Assembly: GCA_965644295.1 (NCBI GenBank)
Contig: CBFFRP010000288.1
Coordinates: 186,001 to 250,000, forward strand
DNA: 64,000 bases
DNA from: Paraphysomonas bandaiensis
Taxonomy: Eukaryota; Protista; Chrysophyceae
Reading direction: 5' to 3'
The notes below the pieces were generated by a model. It made no database searches. It saw nothing but the letters and a program-made list of their open reading frames with translations, and was not told the origin of the DNA. Each line of letters starts with the position of its first letter. Position 1 is the stretch's first letter. A program made the translations under genes and the position numbers. Positions 44,351 to 53,680 of this stretch are shown here, one piece after another.

Positions 44351-46299
44351 CTACTCTGTCATCATATTGATGTATTTGGTTTCCAAATACGGCTCAATAC
44401 CTTGGCGCCCACCTTCACGACCCAATCCTGACTCTTTCATGCCTCCAAACGGTGCCACTTCAGAGGAAATGGCACCTTCATTGATACCCACTAGACCAGC
44501 TTCCAGAGATTCAGCAAGGCGCCAAGCGCGTGACAGGTTGGTCGTGCAAGCGTAAGCTGCTAGGCCCGACCTATGATTTGAGTTAGCTAAGTATAGAATA
44601 GCACTCATATATACTGGAATACGGTAAACACATAAAATATACAATTCATAGTGTCGATAAAGACTTCAACGGAAAACACTCATATGGAGCCATACACCAT
44701 CAAAAAGACTCACGTTGTATCGTTAGCTTGTTGTATCACATCCTCCTCGCTAGAGAACCGGGTCAGCGGTGCAATTGGAGAAAATGACTCCTCCAGGAAT
44801 GGACTCATTTCGCTAGTGACTTCGGTAAGTACGGTAGGTAAATAGAAGCATCCACCAGCAGCATTGAGTTCCTCGTGGGGCTGTCCACCGACAGTCACCT
44901 TGGCACCCTTGCTGACACAGTCTTCGACCTGGCGAACGGCCTGTTCACAGCAATTAATGCTGCAACAAGTACTACAGTCAATCTAACCTTATCCAGTCCT
45001 GCCTTGTTAATGAGTGGACCCATATTTACACCCTCATGTAAACCATTTCCACACTTAAAACCAGAAACCTTAGCTGTGAGCATCTCAGCGAACTCGTCGT
45101 ACACCTTTTCGTGAACAAAGATGCGGTTCGCAGCAATACAAGCTTGACCCGCATTACGGAACTTAGCGGCTAAGAGGGCCCGGAGAGCCACAGACAAATC
45201 CGCATCATCAAATATAATGAATGGAGCATTTCCACCGTTTTCAAGAGATACCTGAATTAGTCATACATCAATTTTCAATACATGTCTCAACGTCATGACT
45301 GCCGTACCCGCTTGATAGTTGATGCACTTTCTTTCATGAGCCACTTACCAACATTGGTAGAGCCAGTAAAAGAGATTTTTTTATAAACATCGGAGGTACA
45401 GAAGTGAGTACCAAGATCCTGGACACGGTTGCGCCCGACTGTGATGACATTCATTGCACCAGCAGGTACACCAGCTTCGATAGCAAGGGCACAGAGGGCT
45501 AAGGCGCTCATAGGGGTCTCCTCGGCAGGCTTCACGGTGACAGTGCAGCCAGCAGCCAGAGCAGGAGCAACCTAGATGTCGGGTATCATTAGAATTGTAC
45601 AGTAGTTACTAGGGGTATGCAGGTGAATACTATACTATAGGGGTAAGCAGACGAATACTATACTATCAGGCACGCATAGCTACCTTGCGTGTAATCATGG
45701 CAGAAGGAAAGTTCCAAGGGGTTATCATCGCAGCTGGGCCAACAGGTTGTTTTATAGTCATGTACTTCCTGCCAGAAACTGGAGCAGGAATCATGTCGCC
45801 GTATGTGCGTTTTGCCTCCTCCGCGTAGTACTCCATAAAACCAGCAGCATACATTATCTCTCCCCGAGATTCAGCCAGGGGTTTACCAGCTTCAAGAGTG
45901 ATGATAGTAGCCAAATCGTCGATATTCTCATGCATGAGGCGAGCAAACTTGTTTAATACTTTACATCTTTCTTTCGATGTAGTCTTTTTCCATTTCTGAA
46001 AACTATCAAAACATGCATCTTCACATTTCTTGACATCCTCTATATGAAGATTAGGGACACTGGCAATGACCTCTCCGGTGGCAGGGTTATGTACTGTATG
46101 AATAAGTTAGTTGAGTATATGAAAACAATGAGATGTGTATGTCAGAGTAGTGTTTACCGGGTATTTGATCAGAGTAGTCACTAAATATGAATTGTCCGTT
46201 AATAAAACTAGAGGGCTGCCATAAGCTCTTGTTTTTTAGTGGAATATCAGAGAAATATCTCTTGGATATGTTGTGAGATAGAATTCTTCGATAAAGCAT
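44351..46299 (-). CDS. gabD: Succinate-semialdehyde dehydrogenase (ALDH5/GabD), probably mitochondrial; multi-exon
   Basis: [52 protein letters not shown]-terminus resembles a presequence. Confidence 0.92.
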
Positions 46300-46848
46300 G
46301 TTATGTTTATGTTATTGATGTAGAGGATGGTGTGGATGGGATAATATGCACTTAATCTTCGAGTAGATTTCTATGCATGCATGTAAGGTACACTGGAAGT
46401 ACAGTATACCAAATACTGCTACTGTACACAGTGTTATGGTCACATATGAACACTGAGAGCTGAAAGTACAGCTGTGTACTATATGGATGTTCTTGCATTC
46501 TGTTTATCGTAGTATCCTGATATTTGTAGTGCATAGCATACAGAGTGGGTATAAATATCAGGGTAATCGCCAAAGTCCTTCAAATACAGCCATTAAAACC
46601 ACCTGTTTTTCAAATCAAACCTTTCTACCATATTCCAAATCTCTACAAGTGTATATCATATTGTGATATCTAAAATTGCCACTTTTTCGATTTTAGGTCT
46701 ATATATTGCCATTTTTATATACCAGAAGATACCTTTAGCTGCAATCTATTATTGACGGCTCTCAATATGTGAGTCGCTCTGTATATATACATATATATGT
46801 CTATATGTTGCCATTACCTTCAATTAACTTCAATATATATTAAATAAA

Positions 46849-49800
46849 ATGGAATCTTATATATTTATTGCTGATTGTGATTTTCAATCAGATGGAGATG
46901 GATATTTATCTTTTAACAAGGATGATCATATAGATATATTAAATAACACTGAGGACTGGTGGTATGGTCGTCTATTATCTGGATATAATAAAGGAAAGGA
47001 AGGGTGGATACCATCTACTTATGGTCATATGGAATGTGTTTCTAGTAATATGGGGTCATCTTCTATACAATCCCCCCCTGTAGAGGTGTCCCCTCCACAG
47101 CCCTCCACTGTAAAGTCATCCTCTATAGAGGTATCTAGTATAGAGGCAGAGTACAGTGGTTTTAATAAACAACAAAAGCAACAGACAGCAGATCAGCTAC
47201 TGGATCAGATGTTAAAGACAGAGGAGTCGTTTGTTGATCATATAAAACTCTTTTTAGATGCTATAGTTATTCCTCTGCAGATAAGAGATACCTCATTCAA
47301 ACGGGATTTTTTGGGCGAATACTCACTCGCACTGAGCTTTAACATAATGGATGAGATGTATAAAGTGTGTTCGGCTTTTAGCAAAGCTATGCGTGAGACC
47401 GTGGGTTCACCTCCACGTGTTTCTTCCACCGCAATCACTAGCATATCAGCTTGTGTTGTACAGTTTGCACCTTCGCTTCGCATTTTTGCGCAGTTTATAT
47501 CAGAAAATTCGAATGCGCTGAATGCCATGAAGAGTTTTACGAAGCCTCTTAATGAGTTCTTGCGCACCCATCGCTTACCGGTTCATACATCTATCGAGAC
47601 ATTCCTCGTTCTTCCTGTCGACCATTATACCCATTATATGGAGGATTTTAACCGCCTTGTCTATCTGTGCAAGGGCATCGGTGGAGTGGAGGGAGACGAT
47701 AGTCTAAAGAGAGCAGCGGATGCGTTACTACTATATTCAAGGGAAGTAGACGATAAACTTGCGGTCGAGAGAGAAAAACAAATGCTGCTGGTGATACAAA
47801 GCCAATGTAAGCGCGATATGCTTAAAAACTAATGTAATTAATGTATTTATATATCTAGTTATTAATAATCCGAAAATTTTCACACCAAATCGTATATTTA
47901 TACGAGAAGGAGATTTAGAGAGAATTTGCATGGAGAAGAAGGTCAACATTGTGTATCGCGCACATCTCTTCAACGACGCTTTTATTATTAGCCGCAAGCT
48001 GACCACACTAAAAGGAAGGTATAAGTTTCACCGCGCTGTAGATCTTGCATCTGCTAGCGTGGCTCGTGCACAGGCGATGTCTCTTAGTCATGCATTTGCT
48101 GTCACGACACCAAGTATGCGCTTGCCATATATATTTGCCTGCACAACTGCAGAAGAGATGGAGGCGTGGATGGGCGACCTACAAATGCAGATTGATCGCA
48201 TAAATGGAACGGAGGGAAGCAGGCGACTGACACGAGGTCAGTCCTCTGCAAGTGTGAGACCAAGCTCACCGTCTGTCGGGAACTCGAATTCGGTCACAGT
48301 ATCCAAAAACCTCTCTTTTCTCAGTTCCCGCTTCACATCTGAAGAGCTGTCAGCGACAGGAAATAAAGTTACTAAAGACACGGCAGTGGTGGAAATGGAT
48401 GATTATATGAGTGAAGAGCTTTCGTTAGCTCAATCTATGTCTGCATTTAATGACATTGCGATCCAACCATTAATTGATGCCAGTAAAGGGGCTGAGTTAA
48501 CTGTGGGTCAGCTGCAGGATAATAACCAGAGCATAGTGCGACCTTCTAGTGGAAGCGAGTTGTTTGATCGAAAAGGCTCTTACACAGCTATCATTGGCGG
48601 AGTAGTGGCCAGAATTCAGACACAAAGTATTGCAGATACTCTTAAAGATGCCGATGTTCAAATATATCTGCGCGTGACAGAGAACTTGGTATCTTCATTT
48701 GTTGAATTTTTAATGTTGCTAGAGATGTCTGTTTCGTCATCCGGTGGGAAAGCACAAGACCTGTATTTAGGAGCTGTTTGTCTGTCTCAGCAGGTCGGAG
48801 CACTATTTCAGCAGATGGTCTCGTATGCGTCCGGGTACCAAGCAGCTATCAGAGTTCTGAATTCATCGCAACTGGCACAGTTTAAGTCTGATGCAGAAGA
48901 GCGCTTTTTTCCAAGTACTTTCGAGTCTGTTATCTATGGAATACTTAAGATTCCGGACCGGTTAGAATATGTGCTATCGAAAATCCTTAAACTGTTACCA
49001 GGAAACCACTCGGATAAAACAAAGCTCACAGTTGTGCTGGAACGTATACAATCACTGCGAACTGAAATGCGAGTTGTGATAAAAGAGAAAGCGAATTATG
49101 AGAAACTGTTGGAAATAAAGAACTGTTTTGTGCCGGGATTATTACAGGTCGACCCTGTACTTCAATATTTAATATCTAACGAAAGGGAGTTCATTCGTGA
49201 TGGTGTGTTGACTAAAATATGTAGAAAAGAAAACAAGATATTCAAGTTCTGGTTGTTCAATGACTACTTGGTGTATGGGACACCCTTACCAGGGGGCAAA
49301 TATCGCTGGAACCGTGCCATGAGTCTTCTCACCTGCACAGCACAGAAGCATACATCTCTTGGTTCATCAACACATGCCTTTGAGATCCTTGGTGCGGAAA
49401 AGTCTTTTGTTGTTATTGCTTCTAATGCCGGAGAGAGAGATATTTGGCTCGACAGTATTCATGCAGCAGTGGTTGCTTGTCGACAGAAGAAAGGCGTCCA
49501 AGCAGAGTCAGTGTCATCTCCTGGCAAGTCACTTCATGCAGCAATATGGGTTCCAGATAGTGTAGGCGTGACTTGCTGTGTGTGCAATGCGGTACGTGAT
49601 GTGTTTCCTTTTGGTTTATTTAGTATTAATGTCATTCTTGTATATGTAGCCTTTCAAAGGATTTACAAACAGAAAACATCATTGTCGCCAATGTGGCAAG
49701 GTTGTATGTGGCGAGCATAGTACCCATCGAAAGATTCTTGAGCACATTAATAAGAAGAAACCCGAGCGAGTTTGCGATATTTGTTTCCCGCTCCCAGTGC

Positions 49801-51104
49801 ACCCTACCTCTGCAATTAGCACTGAAGATTCTCTCGACACGACCGCACCGACGTATGCCGGAAACAGTACGGCAACTCCTATAAGCACTCCTATCGATTC
49901 TTCTCCAATATTTTCAAGTAGTAAAATAGTAGCACGAGATCACTCGACATCTTCTGCAACCTCTCCTAACAAGATTGCGAAACCGCCAAAGCCATCAAAA
50001 CCACCGAAGAAGAAAACTCCTCAGACGAATCCGTTTGCAGATGACTATATGGACGACCAAACTAAGATATCGACTAATCCTTTTGATGAAGCAGAAGGGC
50101 CTTCGTCTCCTGCCCCACAGTTGCCTGCTAGACCTAGTAGTAACATGCATGAAAAGTTACATCCAGAGTCGCCCAAGCAGACTTCTCCTTCGCCCACTTC
50201 AATGACCTCAACGAATATATGGCCTGCACACAAACCTCCGGCTCCCCCTACTTCTCCACAGGTCCCGCTATCGTCAAGTTTGACTTCCCCATCTGTCTCC
50301 ATACAAGCTAGCAATCCACCTCCACCTCCCGTAGTCACACAACCGGAAAGACCACCGCCTCCTCCTGTGCCCACACAGCCGGAAAGACCACCTCCCCCTC
50401 CCGTAGCCACACAACCGGAGAGGCCTCCTCCACCTCCCGTGCCCACACAGCCGGAAAGACCACCTCCTCCTCCCGTGCCCACACAGCCGGAAAGACCACC
50501 TCCCCCTCCCGTGCCCACACAGCCGGAAAGACCACCGCCTCCTCCTGTGCCCACACAACCGGAGAGACCGCCTCCCCCTCCTGTGCCCACACAACCGGAG
50601 AGACCACCTCCCCCTCCTGTACCCACACAGCCGGAAAGACCACCGCCTCCTCCTGTGCCCACACAATCGGAGAGACCGCCTCCCCCTCCTGTACCCACAC
50701 AACCGGAGAGACCTGACTCACAGACTGCTACTGGTAATTCTGTAGATATGCCCACTCATCCAGTTGCTATTCCTCCACCACCTCCAGGTCGACCCCCGGC
50801 ACCACCACCTCGAAATATGAACCAGGACCCGCCTTCTGTATCTTCCCGAACACAACGACGACGAAGTATAGGACGAGAGGGCGGAATGGCAAGTTTACTG
50901 GCATCTATACAGGCTGGGGGAACAGAGCTGCGCAAAGTAGAAGTCGAAACATCTCCCCGAATAAGCAAGCCTGTTGGAGGTGGTATGATGGACATGCTGG
51001 CAACTGTAATGATGGACAGAAGAATGGCAATGATGGAAGGAGATATCAGCAGTGATTCAGATAGCTCTGATGAATGGGATGATGATGCCTCAGATGATGA
51101 TTAA
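46849..51104 (+). CDS. 1381-aa SH3-DH-PH-DH-PH-FYVE-polyproline-VCA(WH2-C-A) protein; 3 exons
   Basis: Introns 47807-47858 and 49592-49649 join three ORFs in frame. SH3 (DWWYG..GWIPSTY), two DH/PH pairs, FYVE (WVPD, RKHHCRQCG, RVC), WH2 (LLASIQ..LRKV), C helix, acidic DEWDD tail. Confidence 0.88.
50316..50711 (+). repeat. Coding minisatellite, 11 x 36 bp (PPPPPVPTQPER)
   Basis: Directly visible; unit variation is mostly synonymous. Confidence 0.95.
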
Positions 51105-53680
51105 ACGCTGAATATATTTATTAAATTCCATGAACTATTTACTTGAATACTTGTATTAATTCTGCCTTTGATATACGCAAGATGTGTATTAAATGCTCCG
51201 TGACTTTTTTCTCGATTATGATATGGGTATAATAATCAGAGAATGTTAAGTAAATACCATTATCCCCATGTTTGACCTGAATTGGGTTCAACAGAAAGCT
51301 TATACTAGCGCCGGGTAAATATAGATATTCGAATTCAATATTTGGTTCAACAGAATAACATATTACATCACTAGCAGAGGTTAAGAGCGTGTTTTATATA
51401 GACCACAAGTTTGCACATTCTTTATTACACTTATGCACGGATTCAATTACCTCGTAGTTGTTATGCCCTCTACATCCTTATTTGTTGTATAGGTATTTTT
51501 CGTCGTCAAAGAGAAGGACTAAATACAGCAATTGGAGAAAGTGGCAGAGCCTACAGAAAAATAGGTGGATCAATGCGCGCTCTCATATGAGAATTTTTTT
51601 ACCGGAAAACGTCGACGTTGTGGGGTGTCGTACAACGAGTAGCTTTATGCTTATATATATAAAGAGTATCGTCCCTTGTCACAATTTAAAAGCTATTCGA
51701 TCAGAGCTTTTCGCCCTCCTAATAGCGTTGGACGGAATAGCTTCTTTTTAACCCGTGGTTGAATAAAACTATGCTGGTAATAGGCAGTATAAGACTATTG
51801 CTTCTAAACTCTAAACGCAAAATTAAGAACTTTTTCCAACAATAAAAGATTTCAACTGCAAATTATAGGCCAAACATTGTATACATTGGCTAAATAAAAG
51901 CATATACCACAGCAGCATATTATTCAAGCTTTATTATATAGTACTCGTCTTTCGTCTCATATAGCTCATCAGACTTTTTCCATGTAAGGCAGGGTTTCAA
52001 CTGGTAAAGTCCTTGTTATAGCAGTGGTGAGCAATGAATAAGGTTTAGTGCATATAAATCAGTTATCGACCCCGCAACAGCTGGTAGAAGTTGGAGCAAG
52101 TGGTAAGACTAATAAGATTTACAAAATATACTACAGGAGAGACTTTTGAATGTGTGTGCATATATATGGGGATAACAGGAACATATATATGTTTAAAGTT
52201 TAAGCCGAAGAAGAGGAATGTTCTTCTGGCTAACTGTAATGACATTTAGCGGCGCTGGGTTAATACAACTCGAGTTGCAATTGCATAATACTTGGGCCAA
52301 ATTTTAGATTTCCTTGCTCCACGACGGTGATAGAGGTGGAATACTTCGCCCAAATGGCAGAACTTGAGCATAATGCAGATTACTGAGAGTTATTCCGGTT
52401 AGATGATTTCTTTTGTGACACTATGTTTATAATACAATGTTCTACTCTTTTTAAACTCGCGAATCCTAAAACAATACGAGAAACAGTAAACACATAGAGG
52501 ACGACGGCAAATTATAGGACCACTATAGCTTCTTCTGATATATACGGCTTCATATAACGCCCTCTGCATATACGCCAGAAATATGAAGGCGTATAAATAG
52601 TAGTGTAGTATAATGAACGAGTAAAATGATATAAGTTAGTAGGTCTTATAGTAGTAGAAGCAAAATTGAAAAGGGCTGAATGTTTTGAGCTATATGTTTT
52701 TGATGGCGCATAGAGATATAGTGATGTATGTGGTGATACTACTGTGGAGCAGGACTGCGTATCAATTAATTGCAATTATTGAAATTGCAATAATTGAAAT
52801 TGGGACAACAAATCATAATAGCAATTATAATTGATTCCAGCTCGCTTTAATTAACTGTCAACTAATTGCAATTAATTGATATTAAAAACCCACCTTTTAT
52901 GCTAAAAAGTTGTTAGAAATGGCATTTTTATTTAAAAAATCCAATTTTTAGGATAAAAATCGAAGATTGGTGAAAGACTATAATATCCATAGGATTATCT
53001 CACATAGTAATTCATTTAACTTAATTAGCGATATGAGCGTCAAACTGGCACCAGAAGTCATTGCACGAGTGTATTTGAGAAAGTAAGTGATAATAGCGTA
53101 GTAGAATATGGATCTTATTCTAGTATATATTCAGTATGTCACTTGAAGACAATGTACGAGAATACAGTGAAATATAGTGATGTCCAAATGCTGTGATGAT
53201 ATTGAGAAACTGAAATGGTTTGATCTTTCAAGATATGTTCAGTAACGAGAGATTCGCATATGTAGGATATTATGCATGGATAAAAATGAGTTAGTGTTGG
53301 TTATCACAACTTCGTGTAAACGATATTAATAAATCTATCTAGTCTTACGACAAATTCTCTCTGTGATATAGCTTAAAATGAGCAATTTCTAATATAGCGA
53401 AGAGGCTGTAAAAGAGATTTGTCCTGTAGAAAAAGAGACTCCACATTTTCCATGATTAGAATAACAAAAATTAGCATATGCACTTGTTAGCTAGATGTGG
53501 TAGCTACATATTTGTAAAACTTAAGATAAAGAATTCAGCAAACAGTGGGATTCATACTATTTATTGTATTACGACTACGCCACATAACAAAAGCGTGTAA
53601 ACTGGTGATGAACGTCTACTACATCACAAGTACGACGTTTAATGCAGAATCTAATGATATCGAACAGAAGCCTTACTTTA

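Follow-up and report, generated by a model that had tools for sequence, protein, structure and literature searches.

A spliced RhoGEF-FYVE gene with a WASP-type VCA tail in Paraphysomonas bandaiensis: a candidate new family of class I nucleation-promoting factors

The window analysed here is a 64,000-nucleotide stretch of contig CBFFRP010000288.1 of the chrysophyte Paraphysomonas bandaiensis, and positions given without a locus name refer to it. At 46849-51104 on the plus strand it holds a three-exon gene whose spliced product of about 1381 amino acids (aa) reads, in order, SH3, DH-PH, DH-PH, FYVE, polyproline, WH2, C helix and acidic Trp tail (Table 1). The last three elements make up a tail of the WH2 (V), connector (C) and acidic (A) type, or VCA, and we regard the gene as a real, conserved candidate for a new family of class I nucleation-promoting factors (NPFs) in chrysophyte stramenopiles. 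An in-frame stop lies seven codons upstream of the start codon, and the relatives described below share the start position. An earlier note on this DNA had proposed one protein from one spliced open reading frame (ORF). Every domain and motif that it listed was found in its place, and the single protein is borne out by spliced RNA contigs, by a near-full-length protein model (P0185) and by relatives with a single ORF.

Splicing was examined by comparing contigs of four public runs (X1, X4, X5 and X11) with positions 46500-51400 of the window. An RNA contig of 3387 nt from X1 joins 46869-47806, 47859-49590 and 49649-50365, with both introns out. Both exon joints are also present in X4, which carries a different organism label, and the second joint is present in X5, a polyA marine metatranscriptome; a 16.8-kb contig from the DNA run X11 retains both introns. 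Intron 2 as drawn in the earlier note is thus removed in X1, X4 and X5 and kept in the DNA of X11.

The short-read assemblies all break within the 36-nt polyproline repeat, with the tail (50684-51227) on a separate contig, so the RNA contigs do not link the VCA to the rest of the gene. This would suit an artefact, in which exons of separate genes or a chimeric assembly only give the appearance of a fusion protein. Two transcript-derived protein models, however, bridge the repeat. The first, P0045, is an EukProt/MMETSP1103 entry of 1107 aa under taxon id 36769, the genus Paraphysomonas; it shows 100% identity across exon 2 and extends over the two splice junctions, seven copies of the repeat and the VCA. 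The second, P0185, comes from a JGI contig of 4087 nt; its 1308 aa begin within the SH3 domain, reach the stop codon and have the same VCA end. Together they tie the VCA to the exons of the guanine nucleotide exchange factor (GEF) part and close the gap left by the short-read contigs, which contradicts the placing of the exons in separate transcripts that the earlier note had raised against its own proposal. With a unit length divisible by three, the repeat leaves the frame unchanged whatever its copy number. Furthermore, two loci of other organisms (L013 and L014) hold the fusion in one ORF, and models from Epipyxis and Mallomonas have the same domain order. We consider the artefact highly improbable.

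The repeat is present 11 times in the window and 7 times in P0045 and P0185; the short-read assembly may have collapsed it, or its length may be truly polymorphic. In the coding sequence, 18 differences separate the window from the runs, of which 10 are synonymous, and six of the eight replacements fall in linkers. RNA editing was considered for these differences and rejected, since the DNA run X11 has the same letters; they are strain variants. The model P0185 begins MES-DILNN (residues 1-10 against window 46849-46950) and is without 25 SH3 residues, YIFIADCDFQSDGDGYLSFNKDDHI. No GT..AG flanks this stretch, and its absence may be an artefact of assembly or of gene calling, or else a deletion in the strain. 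A Gly-rich minus-strand ORF at 50045-50755 (236 aa) was rejected as a gene, being the mirror of the polyproline repeat.

Table 1. Parts of the RhoGEF-FYVE-VCA gene and its product in window positions, with the loci of a motif found in relatives (AF2, AlphaFold2 model; TRF, Tandem Repeats Finder; UTR, untranslated region).
Feature	Position	Strand	Description
Exon 1	46849..47806	+	SH3 and DH1; start codon ATG 46849; ORF
SH3 domain	46864..47022	+	exon-1 residues 6-58; Pfam SH3_1 E 1.1e-9; PDB matches Src/Fyn/Grb2 SH3
DH1 (RhoGEF)	47167..47806	+	exon-1 residues ~107-319; Pfam RhoGEF 3.5e-9
Intron 1	47807..47858	+	52 nt, GT..AG, phase 1; junction reads ...VIQSQ-F-INNPKIF...
Exon 2	47859..49591	+	PH1, DH2, PH2 and first half of FYVE
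PH1	47897..48226	+	exon-2 residues 13-122; Pfam SOS1_NGEF_PH 4.7e-8; AF2 beta-sandwich and helix
DH2, divergent RhoGEF	48380..49126	+	exon-2 residues ~174-422
PH2	49190..49492	+	exon-2 residues 444-544; Pfam PH 2.4e-10; AF2
FYVE, N-terminal part	49547..49591	+	WVPD motif and first CxxC; collinear with uninterrupted FYVE of P0011, P0013 and P0003
Intron 2	49592..49649	+	58 nt, GT..AG, phase 0; splits the FYVE finger
Exon 3 including stop	49650..51104	+	rest of FYVE, linker, polyproline, V-C-A
FYVE, C-terminal part	49650..49787	+	RKHHCRQCG, RVCDIC; Pfam FYVE 1.6e-12
Ser/Thr/Pro linker, low complexity	49788..50315	+	from translation; not conserved among relatives
Tandem polyproline repeat	50316..50713	+	36 nt x 11.1 copies (TRF), unit PPPPPVPTQPER
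WH2 / V motif	50886..50939	+	MASLLASIQAGGTELRKV; Pfam WH2 17.3 bits, E 0.004
C (connector) helix	50976..51035	+	GGGMMDMLATVMMDRRMAMM / GGGMMDMLATVMMDRRMAM; family-invariant Arg
Acidic Trp tail	51036..51101	+	SDSDSSDEWDDDASDDD; Trp codon 51075-51077
Stop codon and 3' UTR	51102..51233	+	RNA contig ends at 51227 (X1) and 51233 (X4)
CCDC53-like motif in relatives	L015:8292-9524, L018:6232-8280, L029:6562-8280, L030:6747-8757; P0086 residues 924-1001		

Domains were assigned by running Pfam exon by exon on all three exons. The first DH domain retains the glutamate of conserved region 1 (CR1) in a 'TE' context (LKTEESFV), and this residue, E125, is nearly invariant among relatives (alignment A3). 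The best PDB sequence match of the SH3-DH1 part is Asef/ARHGEF4 (2pz1, 3.5e-9). In an AF2 model built with 11 relatives (predicted local distance difference test, pLDDT, 85) residues 107-318 are all-helical, and the top four Foldseek matches are autoinhibited Asef (2pz1), Asef (2dx1), the SH3E-DH unit of intersectin (3jv3) and closed collybistin (4mt6). Each of these spans both SH3 and DH over about 313 columns with a root-mean-square deviation of about 6 Å; the linker between the two domains (residues 67-95) has pLDDT below 50, so their packing is modelled with low confidence. From this model, SH3-based autoinhibition can reasonably be inferred.

The second DH domain is divergent in the window protein, and support for it comes from relatives and from structure prediction. 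Pfam scored RhoGEF in 14 of 20 exon-2 homologues (best 3.3e-13), and a CR1-like glutamate, E186, is invariant across 20 relatives (alignment A2). The AF2 model of PH1-DH2-PH2 has pLDDT 80, mostly above 90 within DH2, and matches many DH/PH tandems among solved structures in Foldseek at E of about 1e-11. Because 14 of the 20 relatives score and the model matches such tandems, we take the predicted second DH to be real. The FYVE finger that follows reads WVPD ... CCVC / ... RKHHCRQCG ... VCGEH ... RVCDIC across intron 2, with all eight zinc ligands present; at one of these positions every relative, like the window protein, has His (CGEH). As judged by these residues, the signatures for binding phosphatidylinositol 3-phosphate (PI3P) are all intact, and PI3P binding is predicted.

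After the FYVE finger, the only Pfam match in exon 3 is WH2, and the sequence up to the VCA is low-complexity and proline-rich, with further proline runs besides the 11 repeat copies. Searched singly against PDB, the tail gave weak matches, among them N-WASP (E 3.5, collinear); a match to the cortexillin coiled coil (E 0.17) was rejected as chance. We then compared a profile of seven family tails with 177,635 distinct PDB sequences. The significant matches were exclusively to the N-WASP VCA (6uhc_H, E 1.1e-6; 2vcp, 7t5q and 3m3n, to 3e-5), with profile positions 20-88 aligned to N-WASP 430-497 in the collinear order WH2, C helix, acidic region, and both N-WASP WH2s were matched. The next match was WAVE1, at E 0.67. 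Within the alignment of the seven tails (A1) the Ala and Arg of the C helix, A58 and R65, are invariant. By sequence, the features expected of a class I NPF are thus present, namely WH2, a C helix with Arg, an acidic Trp end and an upstream proline-rich region, and the earlier note's description of the tail as WASP-type agrees with both the profile and a controlled model of WH2 in the actin cleft.

That model placed a 41-residue WH2 segment with the organism's own actin, in three runs alongside three controls. The interface score (ipSAE) was 0.82 in all three runs against 0.02 for the best control; in a benchmark, 51 of 78 solved complexes attained the score mark, as did 2 of 108 mismatched pairs. 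At least 46% of contacts are common to the runs, with a partner pLDDT of 61 or more. In the modelled complex the SLLASIQ helix sits in the barbed-end cleft between actin subdomains 1 and 3 (residues 144-149, 168-169 and 342-356) and LRKV lies against actin residues 24-29, which is the known WH2 pose. Since WH2-actin complexes have already been solved, a pass shows likeness to them rather than proof of binding.

The architecture is shared by a family. Its named members are three, all chrysophytes (Paraphysomonas, Epipyxis and Mallomonas), the others being environmental or unlabelled sequences. Searching a word-indexed database with exon 2 gave 25 relatives at 28-44% identity, and a full HMMER search, chosen since full-length models escape the word search, gave 55 representatives at E <= 1e-30. 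At all nine related loci examined an SH3-RhoGEF ORF lies directly 5' of a PH-DH-PH ORF, and eight of them continue with FYVE, a proline-rich stretch and a tail at the C-terminus, the contig of the ninth (L028) ending in the proline-rich stretch. Seven of these eight tails are V-C-A or C-A. L013 (P0011, 869 aa, on a 691-kb contig) and L014 (P0013, 917 aa) each encode PH-DH-PH-FYVE-Pro-V-C-A in one uninterrupted ORF, hence the fusion there needs no splicing assumption. Full-length models with this domain order are known from Epipyxis sp. PR26KG (P0052, 1417 aa), Mallomonas annulata (P0146, 1365 aa) and further sources (P0061, P0063, P0086, P0074, P0075, P0073 and P0201). L018 excepted, every related locus whose first ORF can be read has an intron at the position of intron 1; the position of intron 2 is matched in L016, L017, L018, L028, L029, L030 and P0006, and there is no intron there in L013, L014 and L015.

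The proline-rich linkers of relatives cannot be aligned, while the V, C and A elements can (A1), a pattern that reads as the signature of selection on the tail. Given that the tail is conserved in relatives only 30-45% identical, the architecture is well beyond chance. Trp-type tails occur in the window protein, L013, L014 and P0074, and also in P0156. The more distant FYVE-RhoGEFs P0076, P0092, P0103 and P0142 stop right after FYVE and have no VCA. Used as a query, the Trp-type tail of P0013 matched only P0013 and P0011; the window tail (exon 3 residues 395-484) had no match in the word-indexed database, itself included, which reflects the length window of the tool. Against its own genome the tail matched itself alone, hence there is no paralogue.

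Three further features were seen among relatives. The subfamily with Phe in place of the tail Trp often carries one or two copies of the motif F/YRKYxKMKxMLPxGAVRQKM..DG...DIDxFL between the proline-rich region and WH2. This motif, which the window protein is without, resembles the C-terminus of the WASH-complex subunit CCDC53 (32.4 bits in P0086, above the Pfam cut-off; 16-17 elsewhere). P0156 and P0189 (1537-1671 aa, ENA contigs of up to 392 kb) have SH3-DH...PH and a WH2-C-A(Trp) tail, LLAAIRQGVKLKQA ... FLGDILSKAMSDRR ... DSDSDWSDSE, with no FYVE by Pfam, so RhoGEF-VCA fusions exist also without the PI3P finger. P0109 (743 aa) and P0144 (489 aa) are PH-FYVE proteins, probably exon fragments, with a C helix and acidic Trp end (GMLDELVSVMQRRR ... 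SDSDSDGWED) and no recognisable WH2; they look like a further CA-only branch.

What is new relative to known class I NPFs is the front end. Like WASP and N-WASP, the window protein has a proline-rich region, WH2, an amphipathic C helix with Arg and an acidic Trp tail, with one WH2 as against two in N-WASP. In contrast to them it is without WH1, basic region and CRIB/GBD, and its N-terminal 900 residues are instead SH3, two DH-PH units and FYVE. Pfam found none of the subfamily N-termini of WASP (WH1 and GBD), WAVE/SCAR (SHD/WHD), WASH (WAHD) or WHAMM/JMY (WMD) in the three exons. WASH and WHAMM/JMY are comparable as organelle-bound class I NPFs that act on endosomal or autophagic membranes, and WHAMM binds PI3P. 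The window protein differs from these in having no WAHD or WMD/coiled-coil N-terminus, and its targeting would be through the FYVE finger of the same chain.

The DH-PH-FYVE order of the DH2-PH2-FYVE part is that of FGD1-6/frabin and Entamoeba EhFP, and fold matches include FGD5 (rank 32 for PH1-DH2-PH2) and the Entamoeba FP10 DH (rank 36 for SH3-DH1). FGD/frabin proteins have a second PH after FYVE, where the window protein has its proline-rich region and VCA, and the window protein has an extra SH3-DH-PH unit ahead of the FGD-like part. The earlier note's comparison with FGD/frabin therefore stands for DH2-PH2-FYVE and not for SH3-DH1-PH1, which is closer to Asef, collybistin and intersectin. 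Asef (ARHGEF4), collybistin (ARHGEF9) and intersectin-1L likewise have SH3 immediately before DH-PH; unlike them, the window protein carries an NPF tail in the same chain and has no APC-binding region, gephyrin link, EH or coiled coil. Intersectin-1L, which binds N-WASP and is an activator of Cdc42, follows the same logic by way of separate proteins.

Spire, too, combines WH2 motifs with a FYVE-related zinc finger in one protein. It nucleates by tandem WH2s without C and A, and has a KIND domain, no DH-PH and a modified FYVE that is not PI3P-specific. WAML and WAWH have been proposed as extra WASP-family members (Kollmar 2012, PMC3298513). WAML is a precedent for a VCA tail on an unrelated N-terminal module (IMD) in particular lineages, and both differ from the window protein in N-terminal domains and taxa. 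WH2 has been listed among FYVE-associated domains (PMC2837644). In the full-text literature, including a FYVE-architecture survey of 2010, a WASP-family study of 2012 and an actin-evolution review of 2024, and with InterPro architectures outside the search, we found no description of a RhoGEF-FYVE-VCA protein. This is in keeping with the earlier note, which did not recognise the architecture among described NPF families; family proteins are already public as unannotated EukProt/MMETSP and metagenome entries.

The 62.5-Mb genome encodes partners for such a protein. It has the Arp2/3 subunits ARPC2 (two copies) and ARPC4, an intronless actin gene (L019:1492-2619) and, on G000:C146 (L027), a Rac/Rho-like GTPase of the Rho family that carries DTAGQEDYDR/LRPLSY together with a CAAX box. 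A SCAR/WAVE-like gene, L002 (G000:C146:63074-66136, plus strand, 283-1903), has a SCAR-homology N-terminus, a proline-rich stretch and two WH2s, followed beyond a short intron by a C-A end, ...ASILARRKNIEMEDSDSEEDTDDDDW, reading ...DTDDDDW; two WH2s are also reported for Ectocarpus WAVE (Kollmar 2012, PMC3298513). A WASH homologue, L011/L012 (G000:C36:61943-65856), has WAHD (1.1e-28), a proline-rich region, a WH2-like MSLLDSIKG...KLRS, a C helix and introns. The genome hence holds SCAR, WASH and RhoGEF-FYVE-VCA. A WH1 domain was not found in the genome, a weak negative as the control genomes of that search are prokaryotic. Stramenopiles are reported to lack, or to have lost, WASP, and the NPF set of this genome fits Kollmar et al. 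2012 (PMC3298513).

Taken together, these data are consistent with a founding member of a new family of class I NPFs in chrysophytes, perhaps in ochrophytes more widely, in which FYVE and two RhoGEF units are fused to an Arp2/3-activating VCA, and we put the probability of this at roughly 45%. In the mechanism that we propose, FYVE would bring the protein onto membranes rich in PI3P, for instance early endosomes or newly closed food vacuoles, where one or both DH-PH units would load a Rho-family GTPase with GTP. The proline repeats would gather profilin-actin, WH2 would hand over an actin monomer, and C and A would engage Arp2/3, so that branched actin would be nucleated on the membrane by the class I NPF mechanism. 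Signal and effector would then lie in one chain, a covalent counterpart of the intersectin-Cdc42-N-WASP circuit. Given the likeness of the SH3-DH unit to autoinhibited Asef, collybistin and intersectin, the protein would probably be kept off until a ligand releases SH3. As a whole, from PI3P recruitment to SH3 autoinhibition, this mechanism has in our judgement a slightly better than even chance of being right.

A number of observations weigh against the proposed family and mechanism, and the first of these concern the DH domains. Taken as a single sequence, DH2 scores below the Pfam RhoGEF cut-off (E 0.006), and DH1 has a conserved 'EVD' near the position expected for the CR3 Asn, which bears on exchange activity. 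The CR3 Asn mapping by eye is ambiguous, and one or both DH domains may be inactive. The tail could accordingly be a true Arp2/3-activating VCA on a noncatalytic DH-PH scaffold, regulatory or targeting, that binds a Rho GTPase or lipids and gates the VCA as the GBD does in WASP; the resemblance of the SH3-DH unit to closed, inactive Asef and collybistin would suit this as well. Set against it, the CR1 glutamate is kept in both DH domains, both fold in the models as regular DH/PH tandems, and the retention of two DH-PH units over 30-45% identity suggests selection beyond that on a scaffold. We therefore think a noncatalytic scaffold unlikely.

The tail is the second area of doubt. Its WH2 scores 17.3 bits, under the Pfam cut-off of 23.1 (that of the relative P0086 reaches 30.1, above it), and the docking score may reflect memory of solved WH2-actin complexes. 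Most other relatives end in ...SGFSDSDSD, with Phe and not Trp; L017 has C and A and no clear WH2; and in L016 the tail is degenerate, with a degenerate C helix and no aromatic residue. On these grounds the constraint on the tail appears non-uniform. The same irregularities would suit a PI3P-targeted RhoGEF of FGD/frabin type whose tail binds actin monomers or filament ends, as a 'polymerase' made of WH2 and polyproline or as a tether, without activating Arp2/3. Frabin likewise couples an actin-binding region to DH-PH-FYVE, and by protein-language-model features the nearest clusters are FGD proteins. However, conservation within the tail is highest in the acidic stretch and in the C helix, whose Arg is invariant, these two being the parts that bind Arp2/3, and the profile aligns through N-WASP C and A rather than V alone. 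A tail that only binds actin is in our view improbable, to much the same degree as the scaffold.

Two further points come from the genome and from lifestyle. With SCAR/WAVE and WASH already present, a third NPF is not obviously needed. Paraphysomonas is a colourless, obligately phagotrophic nanoflagellate; Mallomonas, which is not known to be a phagotroph, also carries the family, so a phagosome-specific role is not required. Finally, it is from sequence and models that we infer lipid binding, exchange activity, Arp2/3 activation, autoinhibition and a phagosomal or endosomal site.

Class I NPFs are defined by the part ahead of the VCA, since that part sets where and when Arp2/3 fires, and the earlier new families WASH, WHAMM, JMY and WHIMP each opened new cell biology. 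If the fusion of GEF and Arp2/3 activator is functional as proposed, it would be a single-chain version of the GEF-GTPase-WASP circuit, one molecule that, at endosomes or food vacuoles, both activates a Rho GTPase and nucleates branched actin. It would provide a natural fusion in support of the functional link between GEFs of the intersectin or FGD type and WASP-type activators, and would add a third Arp2/3 activator, beside SCAR/WAVE and WASH, to the stramenopiles. It would also offer a compact module in which to study how the identity of a lipid, the loading of a GTPase and the branching of actin are coupled at membranes of endocytosis or phagocytosis, and this in a major group of marine bacterivores.

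The sequence on either side of the gene was also noted. Just beyond the 3' UTR, at 51256-51400, depth in the DNA run is about 8-fold higher and several contigs are loose-ended at 51271-51308; the gene is bordered here by a dispersed repeat or a mobile element. Upstream, on the minus strand at 45293-45935, ORF fragments with aldehyde-dehydrogenase-like motifs represent an intron-split neighbouring gene.

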